Assembly (NCBI RefSeq): GCF_001194135.2 | Contig: NC_068982.1 | Location: 44,756,111 to 44,820,110 of the forward strand | Direction: 5' to 3' | DNA from: Octopus bimaculoides | Lineage: Eukaryota | Length of the DNA: 64,000 nucleotides | Shown here: in pieces, positions 2,055-59,893 of the stretch | Layout: each line of letters begins with the position of its first letter | Position numbering within the stretch: position 1 is the stretch's first letter | Made by a program: the position numbers and the translations under genes | The notes under the pieces: generated by a model | The model's input: only the letters and a program-made list of their open reading frames with translations | What the model was told of the DNA's origin: nothing | Database searches by the model: none

Positions 2055-3707
2055 GTGCAGTCTGTGAGTCTTTCTAAATAGCACGCCTAACGAAAAATGA
2101 CTTTGGCTTTTATTTTTGGTAGTGCAGCCCGCCGGATAGTGAGCCCATGTCTCAAGCAGCACCCTGCTCGTAAGGTGTTTTCCATGCCTGATTTATCCCA
2201 TTTTATAAATTTAATTAATTTATTTATTACTTTACTATGGTCATTGTTTTTCTAACATGTTTCAGCACTTTAAGTCTGTTGTACTTTTTTTTTTTTTTTC
2301 TTAATACGAAACTTTTTATAAAGAGGATAAACTAATCGTGTGAGATTGTTTCAATATGTTACTATAGTTGTATAGTAGCATATAGTTTTAATATTTTAAG
2401 AGACGGGAGGGCACTATCGAAATCAGCGAAACGTATGAAATATTTCGTTTGCGTTACTCTCTTAGAAAAGTCGTCGAACTTTGCTTCTCTGAGGTCGGAT
2501 AGACATGGGATGAGAAAAAGGAAGCAGAATGAACAAGAGAATGGAGGGGAATGTGAATAAGGAAGGAGAATGAATAGGAGAATGAAATGGAATGCGAATA
2601 AAGAAGGAGAATGAGTAGAATGACATGGAACGAGAATAGGGAAAGGAAATAAATAAAGACAAGATCAATGTGCATGATCGATATGGATGATCGTCTCGAG
2701 ACACAAGAACCAAAGTTGATATTATGAAACAGAATTTGCTTTGCTCGATGTTAATTAAAACAGAGTTCTGATAGAAATAATTAAGGATTAGTGATCACGA
2801 AAGCAGAGTGAAGGGTGTAAAATCATATCATCGTGATGGCGACTATAGTAGCTTAGCTAGGTGTCGAGATGGTTCTGGAAGTGGTTGTAATGATGTTAAT
2901 GATAATGTATCGGCCAAATAGACGATAAAATGAATTACCTTTTGAAGATAAGATTTATGGATGGATAACTTCTTTCTTTTTTTTTTTTTTTTTNNNNNNN
3001 NNNTTTTTTTTTTTCTTTTTGCATTGATAAATCAGTTAATTCTGAAAGCTAGCTGAACTGATGAACATGTGATTAACCAAACTGATGTTTCCTTTGACTA
3101 ACGATCAAGTTAAATGAGTGACACTGTAATACGGTGACTGACCAATTTAAGATGGCTCTGGCTTAATGTAAAATCTTTTGATAACTAATTTTATCTTTGA
3201 CGGTATGCCTACCAACCACATAAGGTCAACATGACTTATTGATTTCCAACCCGAAGACAACGTCACAAATTATATTTAGGGCGAGGGGAAATAACATAAA
3301 GTAACATTTATATTGCCCTTTTTTCTTTTTTTCTTTTTTTTTTTTTGTCTCCTTTCTCCAAAGGTATCAGCAACTCAGGTTCACCGTAGCTCACATATTC
3401 TATGACACTTTTGGCGTGTCTAGCGTCATAGTGAAAGCAGACATTAGATTATCAATTGTGCTAAAATGAAGGCCAACATAGAAATTTATTATTCAAATTA
3501 ATGATTATTTAATGATTATTTAAATTAATTCGTTAATTGTAATAATTAGCTTCCTCTTTTTTATATTTATTTATTTATTTATTTATTACTTTTTCGTTAA
3601 TTTAAGCAAATAGCAAATAGAGGCATCTATCCTGTAATGCATTGAAGCATCCCATGTATTTCAAAGGTTGTAAATCCCTTTATTATCACTTGTGCTATTA
3701 CTTGTGG

Positions 3708-8735: not shown

Positions 8736-9334
8736 CACACATACACTCACTCACTCACTCACGCACTGACCCATTCACACACATTTTTGTATGTGCAAAT
8801 GGGGAAATGCATATGGATATATTAATGCTAAACAAACAGGACTCATATATGCATCATCATAGATAACAATGCTTGCTAACAAAACGACGCATACAGACTT
8901 CGTTTTAATATACTGATACATGCATAGATGCATTTTTTTAAAAATAAGTTTACAACAGAAAAGAGTCGCCGCCCATGATTCAGTAATCTCTCTCAAACTT
9001 ATGTGATTGATGTGAAATCTTAATATGCGTGCTTAATGTCTGCAAGACTGGAAAGAAACGTGGAGGAATCATCGCAATGCCTGCAGGCATGACTGTGTTG
9101 TTAAGATGCTCATTTTGAGTTCAGTCCCACTGCGCTGCATTTGGAGCAAGTGTGTTCTGGTATAGTTCACTTGTACACACACACATCCATCCACAACTAC
9201 ACTGCTGGTGTTAAAATTCCAATGAAGGAACCTTGGATCTAAGTTAGAAACCGCACTTTCTGCATTGGCAGGAAATCTAGAAATAGATCTAAATAATTAT
9301 ATACCAGCATACATACATACATACATACATACAT

Positions 9335-10449
9335 GTGTCTTGAAGACAGTAGAATTAACACGAAGCGCAGCCTTTCTTGGACACAAGACCACTACATCAC
9401 ATTACACTTTGAAGGCTATGCGTTTGCAATCCAGGAACAGGAGATTGCCACAAAGTACCTGGTGAACTAGAGAGATAGTGACGCTCTTGTAATCCCAAGG
9501 TGCAACCGCATGTGTAGGCTATGTCATGTTTCTAGGGAAGACATCACGCATGTCATCACGGTACTACCTCCCTATGCGGCATGATGCTGAAATAAACTTA
9601 GGAAATCCCTCTGTTATGGAATACATTCATAAACACCAACTCAAGGAATACTGGTGGAATATTCCCATCAAAATTTCTGTCAAATGTAAACATAACAGGC
9701 CGGATATTGTTGTTTGGGACTGAGGGGCAAAGATATGCATCATCATAGAGGTCAGCTGCCCTGCAGATATAAATATCAATTTGAAATTCAAAGAAAAAGA
9801 GGATATCTATGGACAACTGCTTCGAAACCTCCAGCTTCTATATCCAGACTATGAATTCATATTCATGCCAATAATAATTGGAGAACTAGGTTTTATTAGT
9901 AAATGCTTAAAGGAGAATCTGGATAAACTGGGATTTTCAGAAAGAGAAATCGACCGGCTAATTCGTACATTACAAGCGCAATCTGTGAGTGAAACAGTAA
10001 AAATATGCAAGACATTTTTCAAGTTCCAAATGTGAATTTGTCTGTGTTAACTACATCCCAAAGATGGAGCCTTGTATCTTTGTTGGAAACCGGCCCACTC
10101 CTCGGTGGAAGAATTATAATAATTAAAAAATAGAAGAGACATACATATATTTTGCACAAAAACCTAGAAATATTTAGTTTCACAGAGAAAGAGCAAAAGA
10201 AACTGACGTGGATTCTCCAAATCCAATCTATTAGTGGCACAGTGAAGATATGGAGGATATTCTCAAAATTCTCCATCTGAGATTCTTATGTCAACAGATG
10301 CATGCACGTGGGTGTGTGCGTCGACAGTTTAACCAACACACCGACTCGACCACATATTTAAAAACACCGGGAACTCTCTTAACTCAAAATGTCTTGTCGC
10401 TTTGTTAGCGACCGACTTGAACTCTCTCAAGAAGAACTCAAATAAAACT
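9335..10449 (+). mobile_element. 5'-truncated R4/Dong-clade non-LTR retrotransposon (RLE-type) inserted in (CATA)n
   Basis: Coding remnant plus ~410-bp 3' UTR ending AATAAAACTC; flanked by (CATA)n at 9308-9334 and 10450-10480. Confidence 0.85.
9408..10035 (+). pseudogene. C-terminus of R4-clade ORF: zinc knuckle and restriction-like endonuclease
   Basis: FEGYAFAIQEQEIATKYL; CRLCHVSREDITHVI (CCHC knuckle, last Cys deleted); YYLPMRHD; CKHNRPDIVVWD*GAKICIIIEVSCPADINI..KEKEDIYGQL..LYPDY..MPIIIG.LG. Stops at 9468 and 9721, one frameshift near 9560. Confidence 0.9.
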
Positions 10450-10451
10450 CA

Positions 10452-10485
<34 letters not shown>

Positions 10486-10763
10486 CATACACACACATTA
10501 TTGTTGGTATCTCTCGATGTGGATAATTTGTATTAAATTTATCAATATATTCTGAAACGTCTCAATATAAGAACGCTTTGACACAAAAGTGCGTTGATAG
10601 CAAAGATGAAACTTGAAACTCAACTGGATCTGAGAGCCCCGGTTCTCGTCCTGTCTCTTCTGTTTGATATCTCTTTCTGTTAGCCTCTTCTTTAGGGTTA
10701 ATTTCAACCAAGTCGCATTCAACGAGGAATATCATTTACCTCTTTAAGGCATATTAGCTACTT

Positions 10764-12324: not shown

Positions 12325-12488
12325 GCGCAGGAGTGGCTATGTGGTAAGTAGCTTGCTAACCAACTACATGGTTCCAAGTTCAGTCCCACTGCGTAGCACC
12401 TTGAGCATGTGTCTTCTACTATAGCCTCAAGCCGACCAAAGCCTTGTGAGTGGATTTGATAGACGGAAACTGAAAGAAGCCCGTCGTA

Positions 12489-12531
<43 letters not shown>

Positions 12532-12748
12532 TTGTGTGTCTGTGTTTGTCCCCCCACCCACCCAACATCACTTGACAACCGATGCTGGTGTGTTTACGTC
12601 CCTGTAACTTAGCGGTTCGGCAAAATAGACCGATATAATAAGTACTAGGCTTACAAAGAATAAGTCCTGGGGTCGATTTGCTCGACTAAAGGTGATGCTC
12701 CAGCATGGCCGCAGTCAAATAACTGAAAGAAGTATAAGAGCAAAAGAG
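12325..12748 (+). mobile_element. SINE family A, full length
   Basis: Full head to tail; 8-bp TSD TAAACTAG at 12317-12324 and 12749-12756. Confidence 0.93.
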
Positions 12749-13280: not shown

Positions 13281-13635
13281 CCTCTTTTACTTGTTTCAGT
13301 CATTTCACTGCGGCCATGCTGGAGCACCGCATTTAGTCGAGAAAATCGACCCCAGGACTTATTTTTTGTAAGCCTAGTACTTATTTTATCGGTCTCTTTT
13401 TGCCGAACGGCTAAGTTACGGGGACGTAAACACACCAGCATCGGTTCTCAAGCGATGTTGGGGGGCACACACAGACACACAAACACACACACACATACAT
13501 ATATATACATATATACGACGGGCTTCTTTCAGTTTCCGTCTACCAAATCTACTCACAAGGCTTTAGTCGGCCCTAGGCTATAGTAGAAGACACTTGCCCA
13601 AGGTGCCACACAGTGGGACTGAACCCGGAGCCATG
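13281..13635 (-). mobile_element. SINE family A (head runs into N gap)
   Basis: Reverse-complement match to 12325-12748. Confidence 0.92.
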
Positions 13636-16722: not shown

Positions 16723-17769
16723 CCATTTTCATATAAATGCGCGCACACACACACATGTATGCATGTATGTATGAATGAATGCCTGTATGTGTATATGTAT
16801 GAATGCGTGCACGCATGTACGTATGTACAAACGTATGTATACGTATGCATGTATGTATGCATGTGTATCTGTATGAATGTATGAACGTATACATGCATGT
16901 GTATCTGTTTGTATGAATGAATGCATGCATCCATGTCTATATACATGTGTGTATGCATGCATGCATGTATGAATGTATGCATACGTGTTTCTATGTATGT
17001 CTCTATGCATGTGTGNNNNNNNNNNNNNNNNNNNNNNNNNNNNNNNNNNNNNNNNNNNNNNNNNNNNNNNNNNNNNNNNNNNNNNNNNNNNNNNNNNNNN
17101 NNNNNNNNNNNNNNNNNNNNNNNNNNNNNNNNNNNNNNNNNNNNNNNNNNNNNNNNNNNNNNNNNNNNNNNNNNNNNNNNNNNNNNNNNNNNNNNNNNNN
17201 NNNNNNNNNNNNNNNNNNNNNNNNNNNNNNNNNNNNNNNNNNNNNNNNNNNNNNNNNNNNNNNNNNNNNNNNNNNNNNNNNNNNNNNNNNNNNNNNNNNN
17301 NNNNNNNNNNNNNNNNNNNNNNGTCCCTCCTCATCACATCCTACCCTAACGTCCCATTACGAGCAGTAATGATAGACTCGTCCTTCTTTTACTTTCCTTT
17401 TGCTCCAAACCGCAGGCACAACATTAAAAAAAGAAATCAATATTGTTTCTATTATTCTTATATATCCCAAGATACATGACTCGGTTTTTTGTTGAAAGGA
17501 AGGGGGGACAGACTTTGTTGAGATGTATCCTGTATATTACTGGTACGGGAGGGGGAGGGAAGAGAGAGAGAGAGAGAGAAAGGAGACGCGAGGATATTAA
17601 TTAAACCTTAGTTATCTGTCACATCATAGTGGATAAGAAAATGAGTGAAGATAAGAGAGAAAGAAAGGGAAGGAAGTAAAAGAGGATGATGCAAGAGAAA
17701 GCTATAGAGTAAGGGAAAGAAGGGGAAGGAAAATAAGAGAGAATGTGTATAAGAGAGAATGTATGTGCT

Positions 17770-39630: not shown

Positions 39631-40673
39631 TCGTCGTTGTTGTGGTGGTGGTGGTGGTATAGTTAGTATTGCTGTTGTTTAGCCCTAAGCCATCCCATTA
39701 TCAAGTAAACCATATGATCAAAGCTATTCATTCATTGAAATCATGCTCAACCGTCATTTTTCCTTTTTTTTTTTTTTTTTGATATTTTTGTTCATGCATT
39801 ATGTATCCCGGAGTACATTATCCAAAATGTCCTTTTTTTTTTCCTTAGAAAGTGGGGCAGAATATCAGTAGGACTTTTGATTTCTTTAATTTTCATATTT
39901 TATTATTTATTTATTTATTTTATATGACAAAGATGATGACCGGTCACATCCATGGCCGACTTTTCACGGACACCGAGATTGGTGGGAGGAATTTTGTCAC
40001 CCCCTCTTTCTTTCTCTATATTTCTCTCTCTCCCCTTCTCTTTCTCTCTTCCTCCCTCCTCCCCACTCTCTGTCTCTTTTCCCTCTCTCTCTCTCTCTTT
40101 CAGAAAAATGATCTGTTGTATGCCATAAATAAGAGTTCTCTCTCTCTTTTTCTTTTTTCTTCTTGCATGTCGCCCATTGCCCTTTTGAAACTCTCGGCAA
40201 CAACATTGTTCAGATATGTTGCAGCATTTGAACAAGACTCAAACAACACCTAGATGAATGTATAATACATGAGAGAGACAGAGACAAAAAGAGAGACAGA
40301 GAGAGAGAGACAGAGCTTTATTCCATTCTTCCTTTGCTGCCTGACCAGATTCAATGTTAGGCAAGATCAATTCATGAATTCATCTGTTCTTAGTATCTAA
40401 AATCTTAATTCTTCCATTATCGGTCACGCAATGGAGCTACATGACATTTCATCTCTCCAAAATTGATGGTTATGTGTTCTTTTAATGTTGTCTTTTTTTT
40501 TTTTTCTATTTTTTTTTTTTTAATATTTATTCATTCTATGGAGTTAAGCAGAGCAGAATTCGGTATCTGTATTGCGATTTCCCCCACATGAATTATGCAA
40601 TTGTGTATTATGTAACATGAAATAGAAGCTTGGGTTTGAGTTTTGCCTATCTCCCACTAAGTATATATGCAAA

Positions 40674-40786
40674 CATACATACATACATACATACATACAT
40701 ACATACATACATACATACATACATACATACATACAGATATGTGTGTATACATACATTCATATATACATATATATTTATATATCTAG

Positions 40787-42077: not shown

Positions 42078-43264
42078 ATCCAGATCAAGGATGACGAACC
42101 TATGACTTGCGTGTCAGCAGTGACACGCGGCGGGTTTGGTCTTTCATAAAACATTTCTTTCTGCATTAGCATATTACAAAAAGCTTAGCTATAAACAATC
42201 TAAAGCTGAAATACATTTATCTTCGTTTATCACCGATCTGCGATAACACGGTACGTTCAATTGTGAACCATGTTACGCCTATCGCTTTTGTGTCTATCGA
42301 CGCAGTTGTTTTTATCTGCTACTTTTTTTTTATCGATTTCTATTTGGCGATCCACTAGTTTGTGCGTGTTTGGGGGTGGGGATGGAGGGTAATATCGAGT
42401 TATAATGAAAATCATTTTACATTAAACTGAATTATCATTTAATACTTTTTATAGAGTATATATTTATACACTTACAAGAGCAGTGGGTACAACATGCGCA
42501 TACACACGCGCACGAACACATACATACATACATACATACATACATACATACATACATCCGGTCATTCCACAATGTAACCTCGTGTATATCGTTGGCGATT
42601 TTTTATATATGGAAAATGAATCCAAAACGACTAACGTATAATATTGAACTTTGATCTAACTTCTTGTAAAATACGTTTAAAATTAAAAGGAACCACAAGA
42701 GTGATACGAGAGAGAAACGTATGTATGTATGTATGTATGTATGTATGCCAAATGCTCACTTTCGTGTCTCAGAGAAAACGGTACGTCATCGCCAAGCATA
42801 TTTTTTATTACGAGGATTTTGTATACGTTTTGAATACTTGTGCGCACCAGTTATTTAAAGAGCTGTACAGGTGTGTGCATGTTATGTGTGTGTATGCGTA
42901 TAGCTTAATCTACATGAAATCGCTCGCTTTGACACAGTAGCTGCTAATTGACAAAAAAATTGGTGTCGGCGATATAATTAATTGTGCGTGTGTCTAATAA
43001 TGCTCGCTATCTAATTAATTATGCAGCTAATTCCAATACTGTTAATAGTTTTACGAATAAAACAGAGGAAGTTAATGGAATGGTGTGGAAATTGTGGGCC
43101 TATTTTTAGCGAGAATGTAGTAGAGTTTGCAGGGAATTTGTCGAGTGATAAATGTTTTCATAATTTATTATGGAAGTGGGGTTTTTTTGGGGGTTTTTTT
43201 ATTGAACTCCGGTAAGTGGGTCAGTGACATACTAACTCGTTATCATTTACTGAAAGTAATACGG

Positions 43265-51490: not shown

Positions 51491-51895
51491 TTTTTTACTC
51501 TTTTACTTGTTTCAGTCATTTGACTGTGGCCATGCTGGAGCACCGCCTTTAGTCGAGCAAATCGACCCCAGGACTTATTCTTTGTAAGCCTAGTACTAAT
51601 TCTATCGGTCTCTTTTGCCGGACCGCTAAGTTACGGGGACGTAAACACACCAGCCTCGGTTGTCAAGCGATGTTGAGGGAACAGACACAGACACACAAAC
51701 ATATACACACATATATATATATATTTGTACATATATACGACGGGCTTCTTTCAGTTTCCGTCTACCAAATCCACTCACAAGGCTTTGGTCGGCCCGAGGC
51801 TATAGTAGAAGACACTTGCCCAAGGTGCCACGCAGTGGGACTGAACCCAGAACCATGTGGTTCATAAGCAAGCTACTTACCACACAGCCACTCCT
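51491..51895 (-). mobile_element. SINE family A, full length, young
   Basis: Reverse-complement match to 12325-12748. Confidence 0.93.
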
Positions 51896-59508: not shown

Positions 59509-59893
59509 TACTCTTTCCCTCTTTTATTTGTTTCAGTTATTGGAGCACCGCCTTTTAGTTGAACAAATCAACCCCAGGACTTATTCTTTGTAATCCTAGT
59601 ACTTATTCTATCAGTGTCTTTTGCCGAACCGCTAAGTTACGGGGACGTAAACACACCAGCATCGGTTGCCAAGCGATGTTGGGGGGACAAACACAGACAC
59701 ACAAACACACACATATATATACATATATACAACGAGCTTCTTTCAGTTTCCGTCTACCAAATCCACTCACAAGGCTTTGGTTGGCCCGAGGCTATAGTAG
59801 AAGACACTTGCCCAAGGTGCCATGCAGTGGGACTGAACCCGGAACCATGTGGTTGGTAAGCAAGCTACTTACCACACAGCCACTCTTGCGCCT
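59509..59893 (-). mobile_element. SINE family A, near full length
   Basis: Reverse-complement match to 12325-12748. Confidence 0.92.

Follow-up and report, generated by a model that had tools for sequence, protein, structure and literature searches.

Two dead Dong/R4-type retrotransposon copies in one (CATA)n microsatellite of Octopus bimaculoides and the probable repeat specificity of their lineage

Among the long interspersed nuclear elements (LINEs) that carry a restriction-like endonuclease (RLE), most clades are target-specific, and microsatellite-specific members have been described, namely the NeSL-related Togen of fish, which uses (TG)n, and some HERO families of the leech (PMC4640811). 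The R4/Dong elements insert into ribosomal DNA (rDNA) or microsatellites, and the target of Dong is (TAA)n (PMC7998251). Dong-R4 LINEs are abundant and possibly active in octopus, according to three reports (PMC13282606, PMC9115989, PMC8967140). In the present study, we analysed a stretch of 64,000 nucleotides from Octopus bimaculoides (assembly GCF_001194135.2, contig NC_068982.1, positions 44,756,111 to 44,820,110 of the forward strand), hereafter called the window, in which two dead, 5'-truncated Dong/R4-type copies lie within one (CATA)n microsatellite. These copies are designated elements A and B. It is likely that their lineage inserts specifically into (CATA)n and that sister families do so into (CTTA)n.

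Dong of Bombyx mori and the Dong-like elements of insects, molluscs, cnidarians and ostracods resemble the family described here in many respects. The region from the reverse transcriptase (RT) to the CCHC knuckle is 30-38% identical, and both have a single open reading frame (ORF) with a central RT, a C-terminal CCHC knuckle and RLE, no apurinic/apyrimidinic endonuclease (APE) and insertion in a microsatellite. In addition, the linker motif (F/H)xEG(F/Y)xxAIQ(D/E)Q is common to both. The differences are the target, which is (TAA)n in Dong and (CATA)n or (ACTT)n here, and the position of the present family in its own 100% subclade beside Dong/DongAa. R4 of Ascaris/Parascaris is also site-specific and shares clade and architecture, but it uses one 28S rDNA site and is more distant (E values of 1e-44 to 1e-84). 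Togen and HERO are likewise RLE LINEs with a microsatellite as a safe target, although they belong to different clades. R2 is the best-studied RLE LINE, its proteins are the closest solved structures to the relatives of our copies, and the models of target-primed reverse transcription (TPRT), of RNA recognition through the 3' untranslated region (3'UTR) and of N-terminal DNA binding were borrowed from it; R2 differs in having N-terminal zinc fingers plus a Myb domain and a 28S rDNA target. Waldo, an insect element of the R1 clade, is reportedly specific for (ACAY)n, as Kojima and Fujiwara are said to have described in 2003/2004. Its target is of the ACAT type as well, but its endonuclease is of the APE type and its clade is unrelated, so that the likeness would be convergence.

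The Dong-R4 LINEs of cephalopods are probably the same or sister families. They occur in the O. bimaculoides repeat library, and in O. vulgaris five recently active families with 1129 insertions have been recorded; a term search within these papers found no discussion of the target-site specificity of Dong-R4 (PMC13282606, PMC9115989, PMC8967140). What we describe is a Dong-type lineage with a changed target, and microsatellite-specific LINEs, Dong included, are already well known. A search of the literature, Repbase Reports being outside its scope, gave no account of an R4/Dong lineage specific for (CATA)n or (ACTT)n.

Two elements in one repeat tract

The locus lies on the plus strand and begins with (CATA)6.8 at 9308..9334, identified by TRF with 100% matches, which is the upstream remnant of the target microsatellite. 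On its 5' side this tract is bordered by unique, non-element sequence. It is followed directly by element A (9335..10140), an 806-bp, dead, 5'-truncated RLE LINE of the R4/Dong clade, delimited by DNA alignment and by tblastn with L006, P0005 and P0022 in two frames (L numbers denote related loci and P numbers related proteins). Element A contains the linker, the knuckle without its last cysteine, the RHD motif, the RLE domain and the 3'UTR, and its coding part matches roughly the final 235 codons of an ORF about 1190 codons in length. The first tblastn piece (9345-9560, frame 3) covers the linker and reads SLSWTQDHYITLHFEGYAFAIQEQEIATKYLVN, then a stop codon, RD and, further on, CNRMCRLCHVSREDITHVI. 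The second piece (9547-10032, frame 1) begins with MSSRYYLPMRHD, continues through KHNRPDIVVWD, a stop codon and GAKICIIIEVSCPADIN, and reaches TVKICKTFFKFQM, after which the original stop codon of the ORF stands at 10033..10035 (ORF 9781..10035). The 3'UTR of A occupies 10036..10140 and contains a decayed hairpin with a UUGUU loop. Its terminal base (...AAAAAATAGAAGAGA, 10140) is homologous in the DNA alignment to the terminal base of L010 and L011, which are of the same family.

Element A is dead, as seen from four lesions. Translation gives an in-frame TAG in the linker (9468..9470) and an in-frame TGA inside the RLE core (9721..9723). Furthermore, a deletion of about 20 nt at about 9560 has removed the final cysteine of the knuckle and shifted the frame, whereas L010 keeps those 20 nt, and an internal deletion after the RHD motif is seen relative to the relatives. 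The C-x2-C-x8-H part of the CCHC knuckle, CNRMCRLCHVSREDITHVIT, was found by tblastn at 9501..9560, the motif YYLPMRHD lies between knuckle and nuclease at 9562..9585 by alignment and tblastn, and the RLE catalytic core extends over 9697..9774, with RPD at 9697-9705, then IIIEVSCPADIN, and the glutamate at 9748-9750. In two alignments (A1 and A2), the C, P, D, N, K and E columns of the RLE are invariant or nearly so among 16-19 relatives.

Between the two elements an 11-bp remnant of (CATA)n remains at 10141..10151, CATACATATAT; at the homologous junction, L010 passes into (CATA)n. Element B (10152..10449), identified by tblastn, is a 5'-truncated second copy of another subfamily. It retains a coding remnant of 42 codons plus a stop (10152..10280), which is the third and separate tblastn piece (10152-10277, frame 3, LHKNLEIFSFTEKEQKKLTWILQIQSISGTVKIWRIFSKFSI, then the stop), and a 3'UTR (10281..10449) that ends in AATAAAACT. 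Downstream of B there is (CATA)11.5 at 10450..10495 (TRF, 92% matches), which is either the downstream part of the target or a tail. The coding piece of B repeats the last 42 codons of the ORF of A. It is 71% identical (29/41) to the tail of P0002 and 43% identical (17/40) to A, and because these C-terminal 42 codons occur twice at just 43% identity, A and B were counted as two elements. They are of different subfamilies and stand head-to-tail, B having inserted independently.

An earlier note on this DNA had read the interval 9335-10449 as a single element. Its observation of a decayed RLE LINE remnant with (CATA)n on both sides was confirmed by the TRF tracts and by the C-terminal coding sequence between them on the plus strand, but the interval holds two elements. 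The CCHC knuckle that it reported is present as far as the histidine, the last cysteine having been lost. The 3' end that it gave is a real element end, but it belongs to B and not to A, which bears the knuckle and the RLE.

By tblastn and blastn, no further copy of A or B was found within the window, and a Pfam search of the window fragment gave a sub-threshold HSDR_N_2 match alone. The window has 35% G+C, many microsatellites and many N gaps (about 4220 N in total), and several N-run edges, for example those of 16755-17012, adjoin ATGT/CATA-like or dinucleotide repeats. These assembly gaps could conceal further copies. A SINE-like repeat (short interspersed nuclear element) of about 235 bp is present in at least 12 window copies with 71-91% identity, among them 13401-13635, 51616-51857, 59622-59849 and, on the minus strand, 12367-12622, with at least 8 more. 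One fragment of this repeat, at 9119-9165, lies just upstream of the A/B locus.

Repeat flanks and junction phase of related copies

The flanks were compared in 12 related copies with readable junctions, obtained from public metagenome and SRA assemblies. Of the 10 visible 5' junctions, 8 had the cognate repeat, as did 8 of the 9 that were visible on the 3' side. Where both junctions were visible, the same motif on the same strand was present on the two sides in all six copies, of which two are full length. These results support the targeting of (CATA)n that the earlier note had suggested. The pattern which it had named as fatal to that idea, namely repeat at the 3' end only with random 5' flanks, was not found among the 12 copies.

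(CATA)n is the repeat of five copies and (ACTT)n that of about five. In the first group, L010 comes from an SRA-run assembly and belongs to the family of A; it has (ACAT)n upstream and (CATA)n directly after its 3' end. L003, from another sample and with 53% protein identity, lies between (CATA)n tracts of about 250 bp (upstream) and about 225 bp (downstream). Within the upstream (CATA)n of L003 (2047-2290) there are five pieces of 12-15 nt, (ATA)ATGAATGTAAAG and variants of it, each followed by CATA repeats. These mini pieces resemble the 3' terminus of the element, and the main copy begins directly after the last of them. Their appearance is that of abortive insertions with extreme truncation, or else of a higher-order repeat of 24 nt. 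L009, which carries the intact ORF of P0037, runs at its 3' end into (ACAT)n at the contig end, this being its only visible junction. In the second group, the full-length L007 presents (CTTA)24, an element of 4.7 kb and (CTTA)12, and the full-length, decayed L005 is preceded by an imperfect (ACTT)n and followed by (TTAC)23. L006 has (ACTT)18 on the 5' side and its contig stops short of the 3' junction, L015 has (ACTT)n on the 3' side, and the truncated copy of L001 has (ACTT)9(ACTG)~60 directly 5' of it (L001 5656-5954). The 5' end of L002 adjoins other sequence. The L001/L002 family was left out of the 3' junction count, its 3' end not being definable from two copies. (TAA)n, the target of Dong in the strict sense, adjoins no copy with a defined junction, and a (TTA)18 in L002 lies about 600 bp upstream of the truncated copy, away from any junction.

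The phase of the junctions was also informative. The base before the tract in element B, L010 and L003 is T, G and G, respectively, and the tract begins exactly at the C of CATA. Element A and L009 are compatible with this start, and in L007, L005 and L015 a start at the C of CTTA is a possible reading. The constant C start of the 3' tracts would imply a fixed nick on the bottom strand; by the logic of TPRT, and going by these few sequences, it would fall at 5'-TATG^ in the (CATA)n group and at TAAG^ in the other. On the same few sequences, the target unit may be written CWTA, with two specificities one base apart, and the compound (ACTT)n(ACTG)n of L001 is one further base different from it. 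The CATA users and ACTT users were not cleanly separated in the tree of the C-terminal domain, P0037 being a CATA user and its sister P0039 an ACTT user. This hints at more than one target switch or at an easily altered specificity.

It had also been proposed that the element helps to seed (CATA)n tracts, for which we obtained no support. The window tracts at 40673-40735, 42518-42557 and 42719-42746 contain no interruption, and their flanks are unrelated and without element remnants. The tracts at 42518-42557 (plus strand) and 42719-42746 (minus strand) are inverted around 161 bp of unique sequence.

Other features were observed near the related copies. Upstream of the element in L005 there are tRNA matches at 900-972 and, on the minus strand, at 1185-1257 (62.7 and 49.5 bits), which may be tRNA genes or the heads of tRNA-derived SINEs. 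In L002 the truncated Dong-type copy is directly preceded by a PHD-finger-like coding remnant (C..C...C..C..W.H..C) at 3130-3260 and has a minus-strand gene for a DDE_1 transposase downstream of it, which makes the locus a nest of unrelated transposable elements. The sub-threshold Rfam matches to mir-297, mir-1277 and mir-2489 in L003 (1980-2179 and, on the minus strand, 3503-3651) are (CATA)n artefacts.

Clade, protein architecture and 3' hairpin

Since the window copies are without RT, the clade test was run on full-length relatives, to which the window copies are linked by 45-72% identity of the C-terminal domain. This domain has 18 close homologues (43-72% identity), and a profile search with it returned 4573 proteins at E ≤1e-3, a few of them long. 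The references covered RT to knuckle of R2, R8, R9, R4, Dong, DongAa, CRE, HERO, NeSL and Utopia, and came from the supplementary alignment of Mahbub et al. 2017 (PMC5678591). By BLASTP, the full-length relatives matched Dong/DongAa at 1e-75 to 1e-121, R4 at 1e-44 to 1e-84 and the others at 1e-49 or weaker; for L006, L007, P0037, P0039 and P0132, the values against Dong/DongAa were 1e-98 to 1e-109. In a neighbour-joining tree with 100 bootstraps, R4, Dong and the full-length relatives formed a 100% clade, inside which P0039, P0037, L006 and L007 made a 100% subclade beside Dong/DongAa. In the tree of the C-terminal domain, the window copies grouped with P0001, P0002 and L010. The assignment to the R4/Dong clade, which the earlier note had made, is thus supported for the full-length relatives and, through C-terminal homology, for the window copies.

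Other placements were considered. HERO was examined as Kojima and Jurka mention HERO families specific for microsatellites, but the HERO references formed a separate 100% clade and HERO was not among the top 8 BLASTP matches of the full-length relatives. HERO and NeSL were excluded by BLASTP and the tree, and R2 likewise fell outside the R4/Dong grouping. A dual-endonuclease LINE (Dualen/RandI) was considered for L001, in which Exo_endo_phos and RVT_1 genes lie upstream. These are part of another LINE, which stops short of the microsatellite, with about 300 bp of repeat between it and the RLE fragment. Scans of GTDB genome contigs and IMG/VR gave no relatives, and the JGI metagenome scan gave 2 loci.

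The layout of the intact relatives is uniform. In P0037 (1085 aa) and P0132 (1139 aa), RVT_1 is central, the knuckle and the RLE are present, and an APE domain is lacking; the intact ORFs of the metagenome contigs L007 (1153 aa) and L006 (1189 aa) are organised likewise. Pfam found RVT_1 and zf-RVT in the intact relatives and no Exo_endo_phos. The C..C..H..C, RHD, (K/R)PD, E and K columns are conserved in the relatives, and the broken element A retains CCH, RHD, RPD and E. At the N-terminus, the motif W..EL...C...GYM.R...W...HPE....NLRDQ is conserved in L005, L006, L007, L002 and P0132 and is not visible in L009. For R4/Dong elements, Schön et al. (PMC7998251) described an N-terminal, divergent Myb/SANT-like domain that lacks zinc fingers, and the motif of the relatives is located where that report puts the domain. 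Rfam gave no ribozyme, HDV-like (hepatitis delta virus) ribozymes included, and no other family at the 5' ends of the elements or in the window.

The 3'UTR contains a small hairpin with a stem of 6-7 bp and an invariant UUGUU pentaloop, placed 37-51 nt upstream of the 3' junction and present in both target groups. In the window, the hairpin of B is intact (10396..10412, plus strand, GTCGCT / AGCGAC, 37 nt before the 3' junction) and that of A is decayed (10074..10090, plus strand, GTATCT/ttgtt/GGAAAC, one mismatch). The stems of the relatives are ACCTCC / GGAGGT in L003 (3404-3420), TATGTAA / TTGCATA in L009 (3682-3700), GTTGTT / AACAAC in L015 (2703-2719) and GATTTC / GAAATC in L007 (4754-4770). 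The hairpin of L011 is decayed like that of A, it is deleted in L010, and L005 is without it. In the hairpin alignment 92.9% of the cells are paired, against 59% in shuffles, of which 0/500 reached the observed value. All 6 pairs vary on both sides, and sliding the partner columns lowered the pairing to 31-45%. Only 5 of the 323 TTGTT sites of the window have a stem of at least 5 bp, and of these the hairpin of B alone is followed by a microsatellite. Global folding of the 3'UTR was no better than in shuffles (z of -0.9 to +1.2), and the small hairpin alone was supported. The 3'UTRs of R2 and the 3' stem-loops of stringent-type LINEs provide the basis for an analogy, by which the hairpin is most likely an RNA element recognised by the reverse transcriptase.

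Proposed insertion mechanism, rival explanations and significance

We propose that the single protein of the element would bind its own RNA through the UUGUU-loop hairpin of the 3'UTR, at a distance of about 40-50 nt from the RNA end. The RLE would then make a bottom-strand nick in the repeat at a fixed phase, 5'-TATG^TATG-3', or TAAG^TAAG in the sister families, and the freed 3'-OH would prime reverse transcription (TPRT). Incomplete reverse transcription may give 5'-truncated copies such as A and B and perhaps the 12-15-nt pieces of L003. Cleavage of the second strand would also take place inside the 4-bp periodic repeat, and no recognisable target-site duplication would be expected because both cleavages lie in such a sequence. 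As each insertion would regenerate the target at its 3' junction, head-to-tail stacking could follow, as in A/B and the terminal pieces of L003. Reading of the repeat may fall to the protein, with the N-terminal motif (possibly Myb-like), the RLE or both as the responsible part, or may depend in part on repeat units that anneal from the 3' end of the RNA.

Different explanations for the association with (CATA)n were weighed. Ordinary LINE fragments might have landed by chance in a common repeat, since no tetranucleotide repeat is commoner in the window than (ACAT)n. However, (ACAT)n tracts of at least 3 units outside the A/B locus make up 0.37% of the non-N bases of the window, and at about 0.4% per event the chance of two independent insertions in one such tract is about 1e-5, which the independent loci L003 and L010 bring to about 1e-10; coincidence can therefore be given next to no weight. 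A general preference for microsatellites or unusual DNA structure, in which the motif reflects the common repeat of the host, would agree with this abundance and with the variety of tracts among the relatives, namely CATA, ACTT, the ACTG of L001 and the CA-like tract of L011. Against it, neither motif nor strand nor junction phase varies within subfamilies or between samples, and the (TG)n, (TA)n and (AAT)n of the window, which are far more abundant than (ACAT)n, are not used. The main motifs are, in addition, one position apart, which suggests an evolving specificity rather than none, and we regard such a general preference as improbable. Much the same holds for the proposal that (CATA)n is an element-encoded 3' tail only and that insertion is near-random, the upstream tract being the tail of an older copy or a coincidence. 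The fixed-phase repeat directly after every copy with a visible 3' end resembles a templated tail, the 5' flank of L011 is unique, and the main copy of L003 is preceded by a mini 3'-end fragment and not directly by CATA, all of which would suit it. Nevertheless, a tail-only origin predicts random 5' flanks and is not supported because the cognate repeat was seen at 8/10 of the 5' junctions, with no visible upstream element remnant in L007, L005 and L006. The tract at 9308-9334, moreover, has unique sequence on its 5' side, and landing in the tail of an older copy would still be insertion into (CATA)n. This origin is quite improbable as well.

RNA-guided specificity is unlikely but deserves more serious consideration. 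Read-through repeat units at the 3' end of the RNA would anneal to the nicked repeat, and the nuclease would be weakly specific. Copies transcribed from within a repeat would indeed yield read-through RNA ending in cognate units, and the contrast between P0037 (CATA) and its sister P0039 (ACTT) is easier to explain if a switch needs a change of the tail alone. On the other hand, the fixed junction phase and the conserved N-terminal motif fit recognition by protein, as established for R2. Guidance by RNA and recognition by protein are compatible with each other and not mutually exclusive.

Several points weigh against target specificity for (CATA)n as we read it, or limit its reach. The sample is small (n=12), it includes only A and B from the window's own genome, and no empty site was seen in it. 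The 5' starts of A and L010 lie within about 35 nt of each other, so that the two are possibly orthologous and not independent, and in L010 about 23 nt stand between the upstream (ACAT)n and the first base aligned to A, which makes its exact 5' end uncertain. One clear exception comes from the family of A itself, namely L011, which has a unique 5' flank and CCCCT(CA)n as 3' flank (L011 985-1016). In L001 the microsatellite is present on the 5' side only, is mostly (ACTG)n and is absent from the apparent 3' end, as would be seen if the copy had inserted at a tract's edge or if its family were less strict; the L001/L002 family as a whole has no 3' microsatellite where its homology ends. The N-terminal motif had no Pfam or PDB-profile match, and its single-sequence AlphaFold model, with a pLDDT (predicted local distance difference test) of 35, gave no usable fold. 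Finally, we infer the nick position, the role of the hairpin and the manner of reading the repeat from sequence. Even so, we consider insertion specificity for (CATA)n, with (CTTA)n in the sister families, to be the likely explanation. A more elaborate proposal, which we advance tentatively and with somewhat less than even confidence, is that an undescribed R4/Dong subclade has moved from (TAA)n to tetranucleotides and toggles between (CATA)n and (CTTA)n, with a nick at TAWG^ and recognition of its RNA through the UUGUU hairpin.

The general picture of microsatellite-specific LINEs is unchanged by these results. Their most useful by-products are the 3' hairpin and the one-base difference between the sister targets. 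For annotation, they account for Dong-R4 fragments beside (CATA)n in such genomes, and they advise caution, as an apparently single element bounded by two repeat tracts may consist of several stacked copies. Site-specific RLE retrotransposons, R2 foremost, are under development as tools for gene insertion, and the reading of the target and its evolution are only partly understood. Sister families with targets one base apart would be a compact comparative system, for which the intact ORFs of 1150-1190 aa in public contigs and the small covarying hairpin of the 3'UTR are resources at hand. If the specificity is true, the family would offer a natural series of related, intact, site-specific RLE retrotransposons for mapping the determinants of the DNA target, and the high copy number in cephalopods would link how far a LINE has spread to how abundant one microsatellite is.

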